From contig JAPDFW010000122.1 in assembly GCA_028826165.1 (NCBI GenBank), positions 1 to 64,000 on the forward strand: a DNA stretch of 64,000 nucleotides, in the 5' to 3' direction. Shown piece after piece: positions 46,801-60,027 of this stretch; positions within the stretch are counted from its first letter, which is position 1; the number at the start of each line of letters is the position of its first letter. Source of the DNA: Anaeramoeba ignava BMAN (lineage: Eukaryota > Protista > Anaeramoebae). A model generated the notes under the pieces. That model was not told where the DNA came from. It worked only from the letters and a program-made list of their open reading frames with translations, and searched no databases. The translations under genes were made by a program, and so were the position numbers.

Positions 46801-49800
46801 TTATTTAAATTGATTTTTTTAAATTGATTTATTTAAATTGATTTATTTAAATTGATTTATTTAAATTGATTTATTTAAATTGATTTATTTAAATTGATTT
46901 TTTTTAAATTGGATTTTTTTAAATTGATTTTTTTAAATTGGATTTTAAATCAAATTTAGCTTTTGCAAAATGAAAGAAGAGAAGTTGAAGAATTAATAAA
47001 AAATGATGAAATTTCAACAGATATTTTACTTGAAATATTAAAAAAACCAATGAAATTAGATATTTTTACTGAAATGCTCGCTGATTCTATTATATTTCGA
47101 AATCGAGAATATCCATATATTCAATTATTTCTTTCATGTATTACTCAAGATAATTTACACATTGTTCTTTCTTTACTCGAATCTTCATCTTCCTTTTTAA
47201 TTCATACAAAGGTTTTTATTCTTCTATTTAAATTATTATTTAAATTATTATTTAAATTATTATTGAAATTATTATTGAAATTATTATTGAAATTATTATT
47301 GAAATTATTATTGAAATTATTATTTAAATTTTTATTGAAATTATTATTTAAATTATTATTTAAATTATTATTTAAATTATATTTGAAATTATTTTTGAAA
47401 TTATTTTTTAAATTATTTTTTAAATTATTATTTAAATTATTATTTAAATTATTATTTAAATTATTTTTTAAATTATTATTTAAATTTTTATTGAAATTAT
47501 TATTTAAATTATTATTGAAATTATTATTGAAATTATTATTGAAATTATTATTTAAATTATTTTTTAAATTATTATTTAAATTATTATTTAAATTATTTTT
47601 GAAATTATTTTTGAAATTATTATTGAAATTATTATTTAAATTATTATTTAAATTATTATTTTAATTATTATTTAAATTATTATTTAAATTATTTTTAAAT
47701 TATATTTAAATTATATTTTAAATTTTTAATTTATTATTTAAATTATTTAAGGTTGCTCAATTTATTTCTGAAACACTTCAAAGAAATTTTGCAAAATCTT
47801 TAATTGAAAAAATGATAAATGAAAGAGATATTAAAAATATGTATTACATTGCATATTCAATGAATTTACTTGATGGAATTTATATTCAACCAATACCTCC
47901 AAAATTTTCTCATATTATAACAAATGTATTTAAAAAAAATTTTTTAGAATTTAAAAATTTTCAAATTTTAATTCATATTTCTTTATCTAGGATGAATATG
48001 AAAAAATTGAAAAATCCATGTTGTGTTATTATTATTTAGATTTAATTAATCAAAAGGTTACAAAACCAGACCAAAAATTTCTCTATTTAACACTTGCAAC
48101 AGATATTTCCAAAATCAAAACCGAACTGATAAAAACAATTATAGAATTAATTTATTGCAATTCAGGATTTGTGAAAAATCATGTTTTTAAATATTTTGCA
48201 TCAAATTCTTATTCAATTTCAAGATATTATGTTTTTATATTTGAAAATTTAATTTTAATGCAAGAAAATGCAATAACAGTAAGAGAAATTTTTAATTTTT
48301 AAATTTTTAATTTTAATTTTTAATTTTTAATTTTATTTTTTTTGGAAAAAACAAAAGCAAATTTTTCAATCAAATGAAACAAATATTTTGGAGAAATTTG
48401 GGCAATTATCTAGAAGTAAATTATCACATATTAGATTTGGATTGAGAAGAATTTGGAATTTAATGATAAGAAAGGAAGATTGGAAGAATTTTTTAATCAA
48501 AAAATTTTCGGAAAATATTCACATTTTAATGTCGAGTATGAGTCCATTAATTCCAAATAAAAAAGAAGATGATGAAAGTGAATTTATTGAGAACGATGAA
48601 CAAGATCGAAAACCACCATATTTTATTATTCTTTTGCATGATTTTTTCGAGATCATTTTGAAGAAAAGTGATGCTAAAATGGAGCATAATTCTTTGTTGA
48701 ACGAGTTAGTAACACATGAAGTTTTCATGCAATTACTATCTCGACTTGGATATTATATCAAGGAATGTCTGGATAATGAAACACTTATTTATATTGCAAG
48801 TATTATGAGAATGTTTGTGAATGTTTTTAGTAAATTTCATTTAATTCATACAAAGGCAACTGGGAATCCAAATAATAAAAATCATTTGATTATTGAATAT
48901 CAAGAATTGAAAGATTTACTATACATTGTATCAGCAGCACCACGTTCACTTGATAAAATGAAAGCATATATATTTTCAATATTGTGCAAGTTTGTTCAGT
49001 CAGAAGAAGTGTTTTCTTTATTTAAACAAAATCCATCATCATTTGCACAAATCATTTCATTTTTTCATCAATGCAAAAGTGCCGAATTAGGCAAGAAATT
49101 GTGGAAATTTGTCTTTGTAACAATGCTATATAATCAAGGATTTGTTACCTATTTAATTGAATCTGATCAATACAAATCATTAAATAGTTTGATTTCTTCA
49201 AGTTCTCATCCTTCTATTTTGGATAATGGATTGACTACTTTATCTGATGTTTTTAATATATCTTTATTTGAAGAAAAAAGGCTTGAAATGAATTTCCCAC
49301 CATCAAGACCTAACACAAAAAATTCAGTTAAATCGATAGAAAAAGAAGCAAAAAATTTTAATAAATTTTATTTGGAAAATGTTTTCTTTGTGAAAATACA
49401 TATGGTTTATAAGAATTTAAAAAGCAATAAGATTGATGGGAAAAGATTAATTGTAAATATTTCAAATTCAAAACAATTTTTAAAACAAAATTTAAAACAA
49501 ATTTTAAACAAATTTAAAACAAATTTAAAACAAATTTAAAACAAATTTAAAACAAATTTTAAAACAAATTTTAAAACAAATTTAAAACAAATTTAAAACA
49601 AAATTTAAAACAAAATTTAAAACAAATTTAAAACAAATTTTAAAACAAATTTTAAAAACAAATTTTAAAACAAAATTTAAAACAAATTTAAAACAAATTT
49701 AAAACAAATTTAAAACAAATTTTATTTTAAATTCAAATTATATTTTAAATTCAAATTATATTTTAAATTCAAATTATATTTTAAAACAAATTATATTTTA

Positions 49801-50927
49801 AAACAAATTTTATTTTAAATTCAAATTATATTTTAAATCCAATTTATATTTTAAATTCAAATTATATTTTAAATTCAAATTATATTTTAAATTCAAATTA
49901 TATTTTAAATTTAAAACAAATTAAATTTAAAACAAATTTAAAACAAATTCAATTAAATTTTTAAATAAAAAATCATATTTTAAATTTAAATTATATTTTT
50001 AAATTTTATATTTTAAATTCAAATTATATTTTAAATTCAAAAATTTTTTTATTTTAAATTTAAATTATATTTTAAATTCAAATTATATTTTTAAATTATA
50101 TTTTAATTTTTAAATTAAATTTTAAAATTCAAATTATATTTTAAATTTAAATTATTATTTTAAATTCAAATTATATTTTAAATTCAAATTATATTTTAAA
50201 TTCAAATTATATTTTAAATTCAAATTATATTTTTTAAATTCAAAATTAAATTATATTTTAAATTCAAATTATATTTTTTTAAATTTAAATTAATTTTAAT
50301 TTTAAAATTATATTTTAAATTCAAATTATATTTTAAATTCAAATTATATTTTAAATTCAATTTATATTTTAAATTCTAATTATATTTTATTTCAAATTTT
50401 ATTTTAAATTCAAATTATATTTTAATTTTAAATTTTATTTTAAATTCAAATTATATTTTAAATTAAAATTAAATTTTAAATTCAAATTATATTTTAAATT
50501 AAAATTATATTTTAAATTCAAATTATATTTTAAATTCAAATTATATTTTAAATTCAAATTATATTTTAAATTCAAATTATATTTTAAATTTAAATTATAT
50601 TTTAAATTCAAATTATATTTTAAATTTAAATTATATTTTAAATTTAAATTATATTTTAAATTCAAATTATATTTAAATTTTGTTTCTGTATAGAATTTAT
50701 CAAAAGTTTATAGAGCAATTTCAAAAAATCCTCTTTGTGCTAAAATTTATTCAAGTTGTATGAAGAATGAAAATTATAAAGAAGGCTTTTTATTTCTTGA
50801 ATCTTTATTAGAAGATGCTGATCCAAAATCAAAAAAAGGATCAATAATAAAAACATTAAAATCTACTTTTCATATTAAAAGAAAAACACAATCAAATACT
50901 AATCCAACATTATTAGAAAAAAATTAA
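43834..50927 (+). CDS. Large multi-exon protein, tentatively similar to Dictyostelium Sca1-complex scaffold ScaA
   Basis: More than 10 GT-AG exons join in frame. A motif P..P.(Y/F)...Y..A...W occurs twice (LPKFPNIPDYKTFSDYEQAVLSWK; PSPPSAFHFSSYE-EYEKAYKRWAK), followed by a helical C-terminal half. The ScaA similarity is from memory only. Confidence 0.5.
44423..45199 (+). repeat. 777-nt intron of (TTTCAAAATGAATTTTAATTTCAA)-type repeats
   Basis: CAA|gtaaat...aatag|AGT keeps the frame; the same unit recurs in the intron near 46477-46597. Confidence 0.85.
47212..47751 (+). repeat. 540-nt intron of (TTTAAATTATTA/TTGAAATTATTA)n
   Basis: AAG|gttttt...ttaag|GTTGCT joins IHTK-VAQFISE; the KLLF read-through in the ORF track is an artefact. 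Confidence 0.85.
49453..50693 (+). repeat. 1241-nt intron with two successive minisatellites, (TTTAAAACAAA)n then (TTTTAAATTCAAATTATA)n
   Basis: ATT|gtaaat...gtatag|AATTTA joins KRLI-NLSKVYRAI. Confidence 0.85.
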
Positions 50928-51134
50928 ATGAAAGGAATTTATTTTTTTTAAAGAAAATTTGAATTTTAAAAGAAGAAAAAAAGATTAAAAAAAAAAGAAA
51001 AAAAAAATTTTTTTTTGATTTTTCATTTTTTCATTTTTTTTCTTTTTCTTTCAATTAAATTACTTGTAAAATTTTTTATTTATTTTTTTATAATTTAATT
51101 TTTTAATTTTTTAATTTAAAATTTAAAAAGAAAA

Positions 51135-54100
51135 ATGGACAAATTGAAAGAATTAATTGCACCTCATATAGAAAGTTACAATTATGCAATATCAAAACTA
51201 AATGAAGCAATATTAGATCTAAGACCAGGAGAAATTCAAACAGATCCGAAATCACCATCATTTCTATTTTGGATTCGCAACATTTCAATACAAAAACCAC
51301 AACGGCAAGACGGTTCAATCCAAGAAAAAAAAGTATTACTTTATCCATCAGAATGCCGAAGACGCGGAATAAGTTACAGCGGAACATTAACCGCGGAAAT
51401 TGTACTGCAAATCACTGGGGATTTAGGGTTTTATCGCACAGTAACATGCGAATTGGGAAAAATGCCAGTTATGGTTCTTTCAAAACTTTGTAATTTATAT
51501 GGATTAACGGAAGAGCAACTTGTGGAGAAAAAAGAAGAACCGTTTGAAATGGGAGGCTATTTTATATCCAACGGATTGGAGAAAGTTTTCCGAATGATCA
51601 TCCAATCAAGAAAGCATTATATATTTACACTCAAAAGACCCAAATTTACAACAAAGGGTCCTTATTACACACAATTTGCGACTTTCATTCGTTGCTCAAG
51701 ATCCGACGAGTCTTCCCAACAGGTCTATCTGCACTATCTTTCAAACGGGGTTCTGATGATTCGCATTATTATACAGAAGCAAGAGTTCTTGATTCCTGCA
51801 ATTCTTATACTGAAATGTTTTGTTGAGACAAGTGATAAAGAAATATATGACAGAATAACAGAGTTTTTCCCAAACAACAGCTTTATTGCTGAACGTGTGG
51901 AGGTTTTACTCCGCGACTTCCAGAATTACCATCTCAGAAACAAGTCGGAATGCTTGCAATATATCGGGTCACGATTCAGACCCCTTCTGTTTTCACCTAT
52001 GAGTTATACAAATACAAAATGCGGCGAGGAATTTATTCGTCGGTTTATTTTCGTTCATTTGAACAACTTCACTCAAAGAGATAAAAACATTAATTTATCA
52101 ACAAACATTGTTATTGACAACACAAAGACAAACATCTACGCAGCAGAAAGCCAAATGCAAGACCAGAACGACAGTCCAGATGAAGACGAAGCTATTCTCC
52201 AAGAAGGAGAGGAAATTTCGATAAATATAAATTCGGATTCCAATCGCGCAAAATTCGATCTGATGATTACAATGATCCACAAATTATACTCACTTGTTTT
52301 GGGGGAAATTGGCCAAGATAATTCAGATTCCCCAAGTTTCCAAGAGGTTCTTCTTCCTGGACATTTATATCTTACCTTTTTCAAACAGAAATTACAGGAA
52401 TGGATTTTCCAGCAAGTGAATGTGATGAAAAAAATGGCTGGAATCCAAACCTCCTCTTTAAAATACAAACGGAGGAAACAAAAAAAGGAACTTAGTGAGG
52501 AAGAAAAGCGAAGAGAAAGCCAAATTCGCAAACTAAATCCTGATTATTTGGGAAAATCAACATTTTATGACGCAAATTTCTTTCTCAAATGTCTTAAAAA
52601 AAACTCGTTTGATATCGGAAAGAAATTCGATTTCCTCATTGCAACAGGAAATGCAGATTTGATTGATAACGCAGGTTTGCCCCAACAAGCAGGTCTTTCT
52701 ATCATTGCAGAAAAAATTAATTTTTTGAGATATGTTTCTCATTTTCGAAGTATTCATCGTGGGAGCTTTTTTTCAACAATGAAAACAACAAAGATCAGAA
52801 GATTATTGCCTGAGTATTGGGGATTTATCTGCGTTGATCCTGATACAAATGTTCTTTTAGCAGATTCCAAACAGCAAATCAAAATTAAGCATTTGCAAAA
52901 CAAGGTGAACAATGACAATTTCCAAATTGCAACAATAAATCGCAAATCTTTTTTGGAATCTGCCTCGAAAATTAAAAACTTTTTTGTTCATCGTGTTGAT
53001 AGATTGTTTCATATAACAACAATAACTGGGCATTCAATCAAAATTACAGGATATCATCCTCTTTTAGTTTTATCAAATCAAAATTCAAATTCAAATTCAA
53101 ATTTCATTTATATTTATGGAGATAAATTGAAAGTTGGGAATTTTGTTTGGATTAGGCATATTTACCAAAATTATGAGAAACAAAAAGAAGAGCAAAACAA
53201 AGAGCAAATGATATTATCAGACCAAATTTATAAAGATCGTCTTTCTCATTTACAAAATGAATCACAAATAGATTTTCTTTTAAATCAATTTTGTGCTCAT
53301 GATTTGTTACCTTTTACAAATTCTAATCAAAAAATACTTGATATGGCAAGATTTTCTGCAATTTTTTATACAATTGGCTTTTTGAAATGGAATAAAACTC
53401 TCAATTTAATTCAAGCAAAAATAACCGTAGATGACATAAATGATAAACAAGAACTTATTCAAGAGTTGCAATCAAATCCGCTCATCTCCAATTTACAGAT
53501 TAAGAAAAAAGATGGATTTATTTGCAAATTTCAAGGAATTTTACCATATTTTCTATATTCTCTCGGAATACCCTTAAGAGATGAAACTCCAAATAAAATA
53601 TTTCCAAATTGGCTTTTTAAATGCAAAAAATTAATTCAAAAGGAATTTTTAGCATCTTATTTAGGAACATTGAATATCAATTCCAAAAATATTTTGACAG
53701 ATTTTCAAAAAGGAAATGAAAAATATTTAAAAATTAATACTCCAAAATTATTTCCAAAAAAGAATAACAGCATTTTCCAAAATCAAATGAGAAAATTATT
53801 GCAAAATTTAAACCTTGAATTAACAAACCATTATTCAAAAAGCAATAAATTAGAGTATGAAATCAAACAATCTCTATCAAATATGGATATTTTATTCAAT
53901 CAAATTGGTGTTTATTATAATAATTCTGAAACAAAACAATTCTGTTTATTGGGAGAATTTATTCGTTATATTAATCACAATTTTATCAAGAATAGCAAAA
54001 AAACAAAAGCAGAATGGGAAGACAGAAGCATTATTAAATTGGCAAAACAAGCATTTTCTTTGAAAAAATTCAGAGAAACATTCAAACAAAAAGATCAACT

Positions 54101-57100
54101 GATTGCCATACCTATTGAAAAAATTGAAATTTTGGAAAAGAAAAGAGCGATAGTAATGGATATTGAAACAAGCAATGGAAATCACACTTTTATAACAAAC
54201 GGGTTTGTATCTCACAATTGCCCTGTTCACACTCCAGATGGCGCACCTTGTGGATTATTAAATCATCTTTCATCTACATGCGAAGTTGTGAATTATCAAA
54301 GTGATTTATCAACCATTCCAAAAGTGATTTCCAGATTTGAAGGATTTGTTTCCATTTATCCTTATATTGTGAAAAAGAAAATCATTACATATCCAATAAT
54401 GCTTGATGGATGCTTGATTGGAAGAGTAATTGGAGGAAAACTAGTGGAAACCGAAAATCAAACAAATCGGAAAAAGAGCTCAAGCAGAATTGAGTATGAT
54501 AATCAATACATTTTGAAAATTGCGGATCAATTAAGAATGCTTAAAGTATCAAAGAAAAACGGAATACCTGAAAATCTCGAGATTGTTCCGATTGAAAAAC
54601 AAACAGGATCCCTTTTCCCAGGAATTTATCTCTTTACAAGACCAGCAAGAATGATGCGACCAGTGATAAATTTACTTACAAAAACGATAGAGAAAATTGG
54701 CACATTTGAGCAAACATACCTGAACATTGCATTGAATGTAGACGATATAAAGCTTGGAATATCAACACATATGGAAATCAAACCAACAAATATTCTTAGT
54801 ATTGTTGCCAATTTAACACCCTTTTCCGATTTCAATCAGAGCCCGCGAAATATGTATCAGTGCCAAATGGCAAAACAAACAATGGGGTTTCCTGGCTTTT
54901 CAATTCCATATCGAAGCGATAATAAATTGTACAGACTTCACACTTTGCAAAAACCAATTGTGCAAACAAAGTCGCAAAAATATTTTGGAATCGATGAATA
55001 CCCACTTGGTGCAAATGCAATTGTTGCCGTTATTTCCTACACTGGATATGATATGGAGGATGCCATGATTATCAATAAGGGTTCTTATGAACGGGGATTT
55101 GGACACGGCACTGTTTACAAAAATACAAGAGTTGTATTATCAAAAGAGCAATCCAAATACAAGTCATCCAGCTATTTCACCAATCATACCGAAGAGGAAC
55201 CAGATGTTCCAATCGAACCCAATCTAGATCTTGATGGATTGCCGACTGTGGGAACTGTTTTGAAAGAGGGAATGGCAATGATGAGATATTACAATCCAGA
55301 GACAGGCAAAAGCAATGTTCTTAAATACAAAAACACAGAAGTTGCAATTGTTGATGGAGTCGCTGCTTTCTCATCAGACCAAACAGACAGATTAGATGGC
55401 GCTCTTCTTCGTTTGAGATACAAAAGAAATCCTGTGATTGGTGATAAGTTTTGTTTGACTGAAGATCACGAAGTTCTCACTCAATCTGGCTGGAAATTTA
55501 TCAGTGATTTGAAAATTAACGAAAAAATCGCAACTTTAGTTGATATGAAATATCTTCAATATTCTCCTGTTTTGGCTCTTTATCAATACCAAAACGACTC
55601 AAATCTTTTCTCTGTTTCAAATGATTTTCTCGATTTGGTTTGCACTTGGGAACACAAGTTATTTGTCAAAAACAGCTCAAAATCAGGATATTCTTTGCAA
55701 AAGGCAAGTGAAGTCAAGTCTCTTGGTTTATGTTGGTATAAAAAGAATTGTTCGAATCAATTTCCCGAAAGAAAAGTTTTTGATTTGTCGTTGATTTCAA
55801 ATTTGAATCATAACGATTTAGATGAGAATAATAAGGATAAAGTTTCTCATATCGTTGAAATGAATACCTGGATTTTATTTTTTGGGGTTTATATTCGTTT
55901 ATTGATTTCTGATCGATTGCAAAAGGATGAAACCAAAAAAACGATCATTTTCAAAATGGAAGATTTTCAAGAATCAGGAAATGGAGCAAAAATCATTTCA
56001 CTTTGCAAACAACTTGGATTTTCTTATCAACAAACAAAGGAGTCAATTTCTGTGTTTAGTGAATTATTATTTAAGCAACTTGAGGATGTATCACTTTCAA
56101 AACTTCCCAAATGGTGTTTTGAATTGAGTGAAAATCAATCACGATTACTTCTTATAACGATTTTGGATTGCGAAGAGCAAATGAAAGAAACTGAAGATAT
56201 TGAGCGAGGATATTCAGATAAAATGGAAGCTGATCATATACAGAGATTATGTTTGCATTCAGGATTGAGTTGCGATATTATAGGAATGAAAATGCGGATC
56301 AATCAAAAAGAAGAATCGCAAGAACCAAAATATGAAAAAAAGGAGAATGAAGAATTTTATCACGAGGGGAAAGTGTATTGTCCCGAAGTATCAAGTGGGA
56401 TTTTCTTTGTGAGAAGAAATGGGAAGGTTATGTGGACTGGAAACAGCTCAAGACATGGACAAAAAGGAGTTTTGTCTTGGCTTTGGCCTGAAATGGAGAT
56501 GCCTTTTTCTGAATCTGGATTGCGACCTGATATTATTATTAATCCTCATGCTTTTCCTTCAAGAATGACGATAGGAATGCTTATTGAAAGTATGGCAGGA
56601 AAGGTTGGTTCTGTTTATGGAGAATATCAAGATGCAACACCTTTTAATTTTGATGAAGAAAATCGAGCAGTAGATTATTTTGGGAAGAAGTTACTTGAAG
56701 CTGGATATAATTATTATGGGAATGAAGTTCTTTACAGGTATTTTTATGAAAATATTCAAATCAAATTAAATGAAAAAATATTTAAATTGAAAATATTCAA
56801 ATTAAATGAAAAAATATTTAAAAATATTTAAATTGAAAATAGTGGCGTAAATGGAAATGAACTTCATGCAGACATCTTTTTCGGTGTAGTTTATTACCAA
56901 AGATTAAAACATATGGTTGGTGATAAATTTCAAGTTAGATCAACAGGAAGAGTAAACATGTTAACAAGACAACCATTAAAAGGAAGAAAAGTAGGAGGAG
57001 GAATAAGATTTGGAGAAATGGAAAGAGATTCATTACTTGCTCATGGAACACCATTTTTACTTCAAGACCGTTTACTTAATTCTTCAGATATTCATATTAC

Positions 57101-57296
57101 TTTTATTTGTCGTAAATGTGGAAGTGTTTTATCTCCTCTTTTTGTTAGAGGTGATAGTGTTGAAGAAAAATCTATTAAATGCTTAACTTGTGATTCTAAA
57201 CAATATATTGAAAAAGTTCAAATTCCTTATGTTTTCCGTTTCTTAACTTCTGAACTTGCTGCAATGAATATTAAATTGACTCTTGAACTTAAATAA
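51135..57296 (+). CDS. RPA2: RNA polymerase I second-largest subunit (RPA2/Rpa135) precursor with two inteins and one intron (56738..56842)
   Basis: Pol I-type motifs PHIESYN, YPSECR, AEKINFLRYVSHFRSIHRG, LLPEYWGFI/CPVHTPDGAPCGLLNHL, SDFNQSPRNMYQCQM, GDKF/SSRHGQKG, NPHAFPSRMTIGM, YYQRLKHMVGDKFQVRSTG and PYVFRFLTSELAAMNI. The intron AG|gtattt...aatag|T restores LYSGVNG. The precursor is 2018 aa, or 1224 aa after removing both inteins. Confidence 0.96.
52830..54218 (+). mobile_element. Intein 1 in RPA2 (463 aa) with degenerate LAGLIDADG homing-endonuclease domain
   Basis: In-frame insert between WGFI and CPVHTPDG. Block A CVDPDTNVLLAD; block B ITTITGHSIKITGYHPLL (TxxH); block F IVMDIETSNGNHTFITNG; block G VSHN|C. 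Endonuclease-like remnants MARFSAIFYTIG, IQKEFLASYLG and FNQIGVYYN. Confidence 0.95.
55452..56444 (+). mobile_element. Intein 2 in RPA2 (331 aa) with degenerate endonuclease remnant and GN C-terminus
   Basis: In-frame insert between IGDKF and SSRHGQKG. Block A CLTEDHEVLTQSGWKFI; block B LDLVCTWEHKLFV; block F GKVYCPEVSSGIFFVRRNG; end WTGN|S. Remnants MNTWILFFGVYI, KLPKWCFELSENQSRLLL and ADHIQRLCLHSG. Confidence 0.95.
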
Positions 57297-58969: not shown

Positions 58970-59625
58970 TTAAAATTTAATTTAGAATCAATTTAAAAAA
59001 TAATTTATTATTTAATTTTATTATTAAAATAATAATTTATTAATTTAGATTTAAATATTTTCTTATTTCAAAATATTAAACATATAAATATAAAGAATAA
59101 GAATAAAATTCATTTAATATTTAATTTAGAATCAATTTAAAAAATAATTTAATATTTAATTTTATTACTAAATTAATAATTTTTTAATTTAGATTTAAAT
59201 ATTTTCTTATTCCAAAATATTAATCAATGAAATATAAAAAATAAATAATCAAAAATATCAATTTAAGCAATGAAAATATTAATTTAGTTTAAAAAGAAAT
59301 TCAATTTAAATTATTATTAAATATTATTCAAATTCAATTTTTTCTTTTATTAAAATATTTTATTAATTTTATTAAATTATTGGGAATTGCTTTATATTAT
59401 TTTAAATAAAGAAATATTAATAAAATATATAAAATAGGATTAATTCTAAATTTAACTATTTAATATTCTTTATTTCATTTTTGAAATAAATTAATTAAAA
59501 TATTTCATTAATTTTATTAAATTATTGGGAATTATTTTATATTATTTTAAATAAAGAAATATTAATAAAATATATAAAATAAAATGAATTGTAAATTTAA
59601 CTATTTAATATTCTTTATTCCATTT
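58970..59625. repeat. Two pairs of imperfect ~100-130 bp direct repeats in the AT-rich intergenic region
   Basis: tttaatttagaatcaatttaaaaaataattta... at ~58976 and ~59120; ttaattttattaaattattgggaatt...taaatttaactatttaatattctttatt at ~59363 and ~59508. Confidence 0.7.
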
Positions 59626-60027
59626 TTTATTTTTTTTCATTTTTTTCTTTTCAAAATTTAAAATTAAGTAAATATTTTTTTATTATTTAATTTAACAAAA
59701 ATAAAAATCAAATTTAATAATAAATAATAATATAAATATAAAATATAGATGAAATAAAAACAAAATAATTGCTAATTACTTATTAATTTATTATTATTTA
59801 AATAAACAAAAAAAAAGAGGAAAAATAAATTTTCAAATTTTATTTAAATAAAAAATTATTAATAAAAATTTAAATTTAAATTTAATTCCAAATAAAAATG
59901 AAAAGGAAATTATTTTTATTATTGATTTATTATTATTTCTCAAATATTTATTTTATTTATTCCAACAAAAAAACTAATTTTCCTTTTTTTTTCCTTTTCA
60001 AAAATAAAATTAAAATAAAAAGAAAAA

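Follow-up and report, generated by a model that had tools for sequence, protein, structure and literature searches.

The gene that encodes RNA polymerase I's second-largest subunit (RPA2) in the protist Anaeramoeba ignava BMAN raises the question of how a polymerase subunit can be made from a reading frame that two long inserts interrupt within active-centre motifs. The gene lies in the window, the whole 64,000-nucleotide (nt) stretch analysed here, which covers positions 1 to 64,000 of contig JAPDFW010000122.1 (GenBank assembly GCA_028826165.1). A first-pass annotation of this DNA, made from its letters alone, proposed that the inserts are two different inteins and that RPA2 is released by two protein-splicing events. 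Our analysis supports this answer with high confidence: the gene is transcribed, a 105-nt intron is removed, and the resulting precursor of 2018 amino acids (aa) carries two class-1-type inteins of different families, both with decayed endonucleases, which would excise themselves to leave an RPA2 of 1224 aa.

We began with the gene model and the identity of the host. Two open reading frames (ORFs), 51135..56831 (1898 aa) and 56913..57296, belong to one gene on the forward strand at 51135-57296. The intron runs from a donor GT at 56738 to an acceptor AG that ends at 56842 and separates two exons (Table 1); together these two encode the 2018 codons of the precursor. Homology searches were run with each exon or piece, and the joined precursor was used for counting and for local tblastn only. 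Pfam profiles matched Rpb2 domains 1, 2, 3, 6 and 7 and the RPA2-specific domain PF06883 (Rpa2_4, E 3.9e-17). Among solved chains the host matched RPA2 at 1e-100 and RPC2 at 5e-38, and its best solved relatives were RPA2/A135, as expected if the annotation had assigned the gene to RNA polymerase I correctly. The Rpa2_4 profile has a single match in the whole genome and genes with an Rpb2_6 domain are of three kinds only, so this must be the sole RPA2 of the genome. The host gene is RPA2, in single copy.

The inserts, 463 and 331 aa long, lie in frame at WGFI^CPVHTPDG (site 1) and GDKF^SSRHGQKG (site 2), where the caret marks the insertion point; reading the sequence confirmed these boundaries as first proposed. 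When both inserts are taken out, the N-extein, middle extein and C-extein sum to 1224 aa, the normal size that the annotation had given, and are colinear with the solved chains of Schizosaccharomyces pombe RPA2 and Saccharomyces cerevisiae A135, with zero residues lost or gained. The pieces abut exactly, at residues 504/505 and 902/903 of S. pombe RPA2 and at 528/529 and 917/918 of S. cerevisiae A135. The open frames of the inserts are not due to chance: given the local base composition, a stop-free frame would arise with a probability of 1.5e-19 in insert 1 and 1.7e-13 in insert 2, and the other two reading frames across the inserts hold 16-38 stops each.

Table 1. Features of the RPA2 gene, in positions of the window.
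Feature	Position	Strand	Support
RPA2 exon 1, start codon to splice donor	51135..56737	+	1867 aa + 2 nt; Pfam Rpb2_1/2/3/6, Rpa2_4; joint in RNA contig
N-extein, 565 aa, ends ...EYWGFI	51135..52829	+	last 89-90 aa align to S. pombe RPA2 416-504 and S. cerevisiae A135 439-528, up to the junction exactly
Intein 1, 463 aa (precursor aa 566-1028), C...SHN then C	52830..54218	+	Pfam Intein_splicing, invariant residues, Foldseek
Middle extein, 411 aa, CPVHTPDG... to ...IGDKF	54219..55451	+	end-to-end with S. pombe RPA2 505-902, E 1.4e-100
Rpa2_4 (RPA2-specific domain) within the middle extein	54510-54659	+	Pfam
Intein 2, 331 aa (precursor aa 1440-1770), C...TGN then S	55452..56444	+	family homology, invariant residues, AlphaFold2 and Foldseek
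C-extein, first part, starts SSRHGQKG, runs on into exon 2	56445..56737	+	from its first residue onward aligns to S. pombe RPA2 903-999 and S. cerevisiae A135 918-1014
Spliceosomal intron, 105 nt, GT..AG	56738..56842	+	skipped in X1 contig; P0001 reads ...NEVLYSGVNGNE... over the joint
RPA2 exon 2, including stop codon	56843..57296	+	Pfam Rpb2_6 C-terminal part, Rpb2_7; 100% identity to P0001

Base composition varies along the locus. The content of guanine and cytosine (GC) is 25.9% in intein 1, which is distinctly AT-richer than the exteins (~36%), and 32.1% in intein 2, which is somewhat so; in the intergenic flanks (49500-50999 and 59000-59999) it is 4-14%, compared to 26-40% in coding parts.

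Inserts that keep the frame open could be unusual in-frame introns that are removed from the RNA and never translated, an alternative that the first-pass annotation itself had raised, and this gene does contain a true spliceosomal intron. The RNA evidence comes from P0001, a transcript ORF of A. ignava in EukProt, and from the contigs of one public run (X1). P0001 is 100% identical to the RPA2 gene product. Of intein 1 it includes the last 143 aa, which are followed by the SHN^CPVH junction; intein 2 is present in full, as is the joint between the spliced exons. In X1, a 3571-nt contig that is continuous over 53634-56735 has lost the 105-nt GT..AG intron and keeps all of insert 2 together with the 3' 585 nt of insert 1 and its 3' junction; a second contig falls inside intein 1. 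The kind of run is not on record, and we regard X1 as RNA-derived because its contig is without the intron. As a contig from which the true intron has been removed retains insert 2 and the 3' part of insert 1, removal at the RNA level is refuted for insert 2 and, in the case of insert 1, for its 3' junction, which is RNA evidence that intein 2, together with the 3' part of intein 1, is translated. The RNA contigs do not reach the 5' junction of insert 1. Across both inserts, however, the long open frames contain intein blocks, and introns in so AT-rich a genome would not stay open, so that the intron explanation has almost no chance of being right. Between 53634 and 57296 the X1 contig and the window are separated by five differences, every one of them synonymous, and X1 may thus come from another allele or culture.

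Both inserts are inteins, as had been claimed, and the evidence for each is of a different kind. Insert 1 starts with Cys1, has TGYH as block B and ends in ...NHTFITNGFVSHN, followed by Cys+1. The Pfam profile Intein_splicing (PF14890) matched it at 4.7e-15, with 56.2 bits against a cut-off of 35.8, and by sequence its best solved relatives in the PDB are DnaB inteins. Residues C1, H76, D444, H452, H462 and N463 are invariant in six of six intein 1 family copies from the organism's own genome (alignment A1). When the AlphaFold2 (AF2) model of insert 1, with a predicted local distance difference test score (pLDDT) of 72, was compared to solved structures with Foldseek, the top matches were TliVMA (E 1e-14), PI-PkoII and PI-PfuI, all of them endonuclease-bearing inteins, and mini-inteins matched its splicing part with template-modelling (TM) scores of 0.53-0.59 (target-length normalised). 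Insertion between colinear exteins, splicing residues, profile and fold all agree, and insert 1 is an intein. A protein-database search with the intein 1 region returned the organism's own transcript alone; the relatives of this intein come from its own genome and from giant-virus contigs.

The middle of intein 1 is a degenerate LAGLIDADG-like domain. An acid occupies the LAGLIDADG catalytic positions in 0 of the A. ignava intein 1 family copies, and the RPA2 copy has a shortened helix 2. The LAGLIDADG fold itself is retained in both inteins of RPA2, as seen in Foldseek matches to I-DmoI and I-Tsp061I. The motifs suggest that the homing endonuclease of intein 1 is dead. Just after block B, a loop of the splicing domain carries an Asn/Ser-rich low-complexity run (aa 81-93, ..NQNSNSNSN..), which has a pLDDT below 50, is missing from the paralogous copies and recalls the Asn/Gln runs of the Dictyostelium RPC2 intein.

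Insert 2 required other evidence. The annotation had suggested profile searches of both inserts as a check, and while such a search recovers intein 1, intein 2 gave only a chance match against Pfam at E values up to 10. A curated intein profile does not match it, and a sequence search of the PDB returned a weak, off-register match to a RecA intein only (E ~0.9). Its blocks can nonetheless be read from the sequence, with Cys1 (CLTEDHEVLT...), TWEH as block B, and a C-terminus of ...FFVRRNGKVMWTGN followed by Ser+1. Its relatives are numerous: we found 190 homologues in long RNA polymerase subunit proteins and 3434 cluster representatives (E up to 1e-3), and nearly all of the 120 matches listed are second-largest subunits of RNA polymerases, many of them with several inteins. 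Members of this family start CLTxDHEVLTxxGW and end VYCxxVPSHxFYVRRNGKxVWTGN. Among 242 that could be placed, 64 (this one included) lie at GDKF^S(S/N/A)RHGQKG, 65 at GDKFA^SRHGQKG and 91 at DKIH^SRxRGP, the last being the RPB2-b site of Spiromyces and Coelomomyces; the terminal blocks of intein 2 are shared by 62 further inteins at GDK(F/L/M)^(S/C)xRHGQKG. In viral contigs, at least 493 stretches encode a relative, and of 80 that were retained, 15 are at the GDKF^ site.

Intein 2 keeps every family-invariant column, namely C1, L9, T10, G13, T65, H68, V308, W328, G330 and N331 (alignment A2). The AF2 model built from the family alignment reached a pLDDT of 91.1 and a predicted TM score of 0.90. 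Its top Foldseek matches were PhoVMA (4.8e-11), TliVMA and PI-SceI inteins; the middle domain matches I-DmoI, and the splicing part the Prp8 intein and the Hedgehog Hint domain. We count insert 2 as an intein because it is homologous to hundreds of inteins at the same site and has the Hedgehog/intein (HINT) fold. Where relatives have (S/A)(D/E)G and GDG in the LAGLIDADG motifs, intein 2 has RLL and DCE, offset from the acid column, and ~35 columns are deleted. Both catalytic acids are thus gone, a C-terminal segment of the domain is missing, and PF14528 has no match in intein 2, though it matches many relatives. Given the replacement of both acids and the deletion, the homing endonuclease of intein 2 looks dead and is presumably inactive.

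How would such a precursor give rise to RPA2? It would fold two HINT domains, each of which would leave by the canonical class-1 pathway of four steps: Cys1 undergoes an N-S acyl shift, trans-thioesterification transfers the chain to the +1 Cys or Ser, the terminal Asn cyclises, and a last acyl shift follows. Excision of intein 1 would restore WGFI-CPVH in the fork domain, and excision of intein 2 would restore GDKF-SSRHGQKG, a motif of the active centre in the hybrid-binding domain. From general knowledge of RPB2 we also take both restored motifs to lie at the active centre. That placement follows the mapping of Goodwin et al. (PMC1635734). Since this essential gene is single-copy, open and expressed, both splicing events must succeed, and we infer that both inteins do splice.

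A competing possibility is that one or both inserts are splicing-dead, either tolerated within the polymerase or carried by a gene that is a dying pseudogene. Intein 2 could be read this way, as it ends in Gly-Asn, has no block-F His, escapes Pfam and sits on a long branch in the family trees, and stops and frameshifts occur in one of the genome's two copies of RPC2, which carry related inteins. However, a Gly-Asn end is the rule in the intein 2 family and a known intein variant, found in Pno RPA2 and Cre RPB2 (PMC1635734), and all family-invariant splicing residues are kept in both inteins. Moreover, the insertion sites fall in the most conserved segments of the active centre, where there is no room for several hundred extra residues, and the sole RPA2 of the genome is open over 2018 codons, is expressed and shows synonymous differences only. 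We therefore consider splicing-dead inserts very unlikely.

Certain points weigh against the conclusion that both inteins splice and have lost their endonucleases. Splicing of RPA2 is deduced from DNA, RNA and predicted folds. In X1, contigs are missing from the 5' half of the gene, where the upstream exon and, at 52830, the N-terminal junction of intein 1 lie. Intein 2 is without the penultimate His and has Gly where many relatives have the block-F His, and its failure to match Pfam counts here as well. Confidence in the structural model of intein 1 is moderate only, and endonuclease inactivity is, for both inteins, a reading of motifs in alignments A1 and A2.

With both endonuclease domains decayed, the inteins now look fixed and immobile. 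They may persist solely because an inexact deletion would ruin an essential enzyme.

To place the two inteins among their kin, we turned to the rest of the A. ignava genome, which contains at least 38 Intein_splicing matches across many contigs. This is in line with the high intein load that the annotation had noted for Anaeramoeba and with the 103 inteins of A. ignava BMAN given in a published survey (Gallot-Lavallee et al., PNAS 2023; PMC10710043). Intein 1 has five further family copies in the genome, with 24-28% identity over the alignment. Three of these, one in RPB2 and one in each of two RPC2 copies, all occupy the homologous position in the fork domain. In RPC2 the intein 1 relative lies at FGIL^CPSDTPEG and is 32-33% identical, and a relative of intein 2 lies at GDKF^SSRHGQKG, is 33% identical and ends GGN^S. 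RPC2 belongs to a different polymerase, yet the same two sites as in RPA2 are occupied by related inteins.

In RPB2 (G000:C13:723281-724579, + strand, L005), the 433-aa relative of intein 1 at the fork site reads ..QLHNTHWGIV^C...THN^CPCESPEG..; the GDKF site of this gene has no insert, and the Rpb2_6 profile runs through it uninterrupted. The two RPC2 copies are inverted and ~60 kb apart (G000:C89:217000-227000, + strand, and G000:C89:283000-293000, - strand; L010 and L011), and are 98.1% identical over 5.5 kb, with 32 gap openings between them. In the plus-strand copy, TAA stops and frameshifts occur in the intein 2-like insert and in the exteins, and this copy is either a decaying duplicate or an assembly error. 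The remaining two intein 1 relatives are found in a pair of paralogous HEAT/Maestro-like genes (G000:C126:768347-769666, - strand, and G000:C24:620366-621694, + strand; L006 and L007). They are 24-26% identical, end NHTFIANGF(V/I)THN^C and are inserted at ...SPHL(I/L)TL^C(S/T)..., so that a polymerase-type intein has here spread to a non-homologous host.

Beyond this genome, metagenome-assembled genomes (MAGs) of giant viruses encode relatives of intein 1 at the same site of Rpb2, ...WG(Y/F)(I/L)^C...NGFVTHN^CPxE(T/S)PEG, and others at the neighbouring ^CGLVKN site, which resembles RPC2-a (L019, L028 and L031). One giant-virus MAG contig (L025:1501-2682) has a relative at a further polymerase site, ..PDLIINPH^C...SHN^CIPSRMT.... 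For intein 2, we identified the RPA2 of a distant eukaryote in a Logan assembly (P0108; L015:3001-6993, SRR32590482) that has the Rpa2_4 domain and 44% extein identity to A. ignava RPA2. Its fork site is intein-free and a 323-aa intein interrupts GDKF^SSRHGQKG, indicating that RPA2 inteins at the GDKF site are not confined to Anaeramoeba.

Both sites have counterparts among named inteins. The viral RPO-a allele of Emiliania huxleyi virus (EhV) 163/99B1 and of a viral relic in Phytophthora ramorum (PMC1635734; PMC5784728 suppl. 3) is inserted at GDKF^SSRHGQKG, as intein 2 is. The termini of the EhV-99B1 intein (Green et al.), CLTADHEVLT..GWK and ..IFYVRRNGK...TGN before SSRHGQKG, are nearly those of intein 2, and the two belong to one large family. 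The hosts differ, being a virus Rpb2 for RPO-a and a cellular RPA2 for intein 2, and the EhV intein keeps GDG-type LAGLIDADG motifs, whereas intein 2 is without both catalytic acids. Insertion point and termini place intein 2 at the RPO-a site of viruses, as one of its alleles (Goodwin et al. 2006).

Intein 1 resembles Bde RPB2-c of Batrachochytrium and Ddi/Dla RPC2-a of dictyostelids (PMC1635734) in its position in the fork domain, its Cys1...His-Asn^Cys arrangement, its length (~460-490 aa) and its degenerate LAGLIDADG domain, although these known inteins reside in other paralogues and intein 1 in RPA2. With the Ddi RPC2 intein it has in common a C(L/V)xPDT start and an ITTITG strand. The RPC2-a site, ^CGLVKN, lies 10 residues downstream of site 1 and is a different site. 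RPB2-c is 10 alignment columns before RPC2-a, and site 1 is exactly 10 residues before CGLL; going by these alignment positions, site 1 is probably RPB2-c. Pno RPA2-a of Phaeosphaeria nodorum, the first RPA2 intein to be named (2006), shares with the A. ignava gene its RPA2 host, with intein 2 a Gly-Asn end, and has a degenerate endonuclease, but it differs in being a single intein, from a fungus, at ..NMYQ^CQMGKQTMG.

Did the two inteins enter RPA2 independently, as the annotation supposed from their dissimilar blocks? A pairwise comparison finds no similarity between them (E 1.3), and their relatives are not the same, so that they belong to different intein families, which supports the claim of two different inteins. 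This fits separate origins. Separate entry into RPA2 is plausible, but here the earlier claim needs qualifying: each intein has a relative at the paralogous site in the same genome, so that transfer from paralogue to paralogue is a live alternative to entry from outside. The RPA2 and RPC2 copies of intein 2 share odd traits of a decayed endonuclease (A2). In a FastTree phylogeny of 242 family members, flagged for odd composition and for long branches, the two A. ignava inteins at the GDKF site stand apart; in a mixture-model tree of 32 rows they are close, with weak support. In an approximately unbiased (AU) test, grouping the two as sisters was not rejected: the tree under this constraint was 7.8 log-likelihood units better (p 0.69), a result compatible with paralogue transfer between RPA2 and RPC2, though both copies sit on long branches with unusual composition. 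We also considered a block conversion between RPA2 and RPC2 that carried both inteins at once, and rejected it: the middle extein holds the RPA2-specific domain and fits RPA2 far better than RPC2.

Pushed further, the paralogue idea becomes a scenario in which the inteins of RPA2 and RPC2, and at site 1 also of RPB2, arose by homing among ancient paralogues within the genome, the RPA2 and RPC2 copies of intein 2 are sisters that share an already-decayed endonuclease, and all three nuclear polymerases rely on related inteins, which might serve as a shared post-translational control, for instance through redox-sensitive splicing. We think this unlikely as a whole. If it were true, the regulatory role would be the new part, as paralogue transfer as such is already in print, having been proposed for A. 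ignava in the survey (PMC10710043).

The regulatory part can be weighed by itself. Splicing could be conditional, for example if a disulfide between Cys1 and Cys+1 of intein 1 formed under oxidative stress in this anaerobe and acted as a post-translational brake on three polymerases. Redox-controlled inteins are known in other systems. Intein 1 relatives at the same site in RPA2, RPB2 and RPC2 all have Cys1 and Cys+1, and the inteins persist even though their endonucleases look dead. Yet the sequence requires nothing of the kind, and the price of deleting an intein imprecisely from a conserved site (PMC1635734) accounts in full for their persistence. We consider conditional splicing improbable.

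The novelty is low, as the inteins of A. ignava have already been surveyed and both sites are known to hold inteins in homologous polymerases. The survey counts 15 A. ignava proteins with two or more inteins, describes inteins in the second subunits of all three RNA polymerases, I-III (its Fig. S6), links A. ignava inteins to giant viruses, places another A. ignava intein between reporter halves in E. coli and, from mass spectrometry, reports that two RPB2 inteins of the sister species A. flamelloides are spliced (PMC10710043). Its main text does not mention RPA2; a survey based on BLAST and HMM searches very probably found both RPA2 inteins all the same. The finding is therefore already known in kind, and almost certainly in instance. 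The eight intein sites that the survey gives as common to A. ignava and A. flamelloides do not include RPA2, so that both insertions are probably either confined to the lineage of A. ignava or have disappeared from A. flamelloides.

The literature already has A. ignava proteins with two inteins, inteins in second-largest polymerase subunits and both of the insertion sites, and the instance as such matters little. What is added here is a checked gene model with exact boundaries, and the placement of an intein that Pfam does not see in a family of thousands at three neighbouring polymerase sites. RPA2 and RPC2 of A. ignava, with related inteins at the same two sites, offer a small system in which the debated alternatives, homing from one paralogue to another and repeated invasion from giant viruses, can be set against each other.

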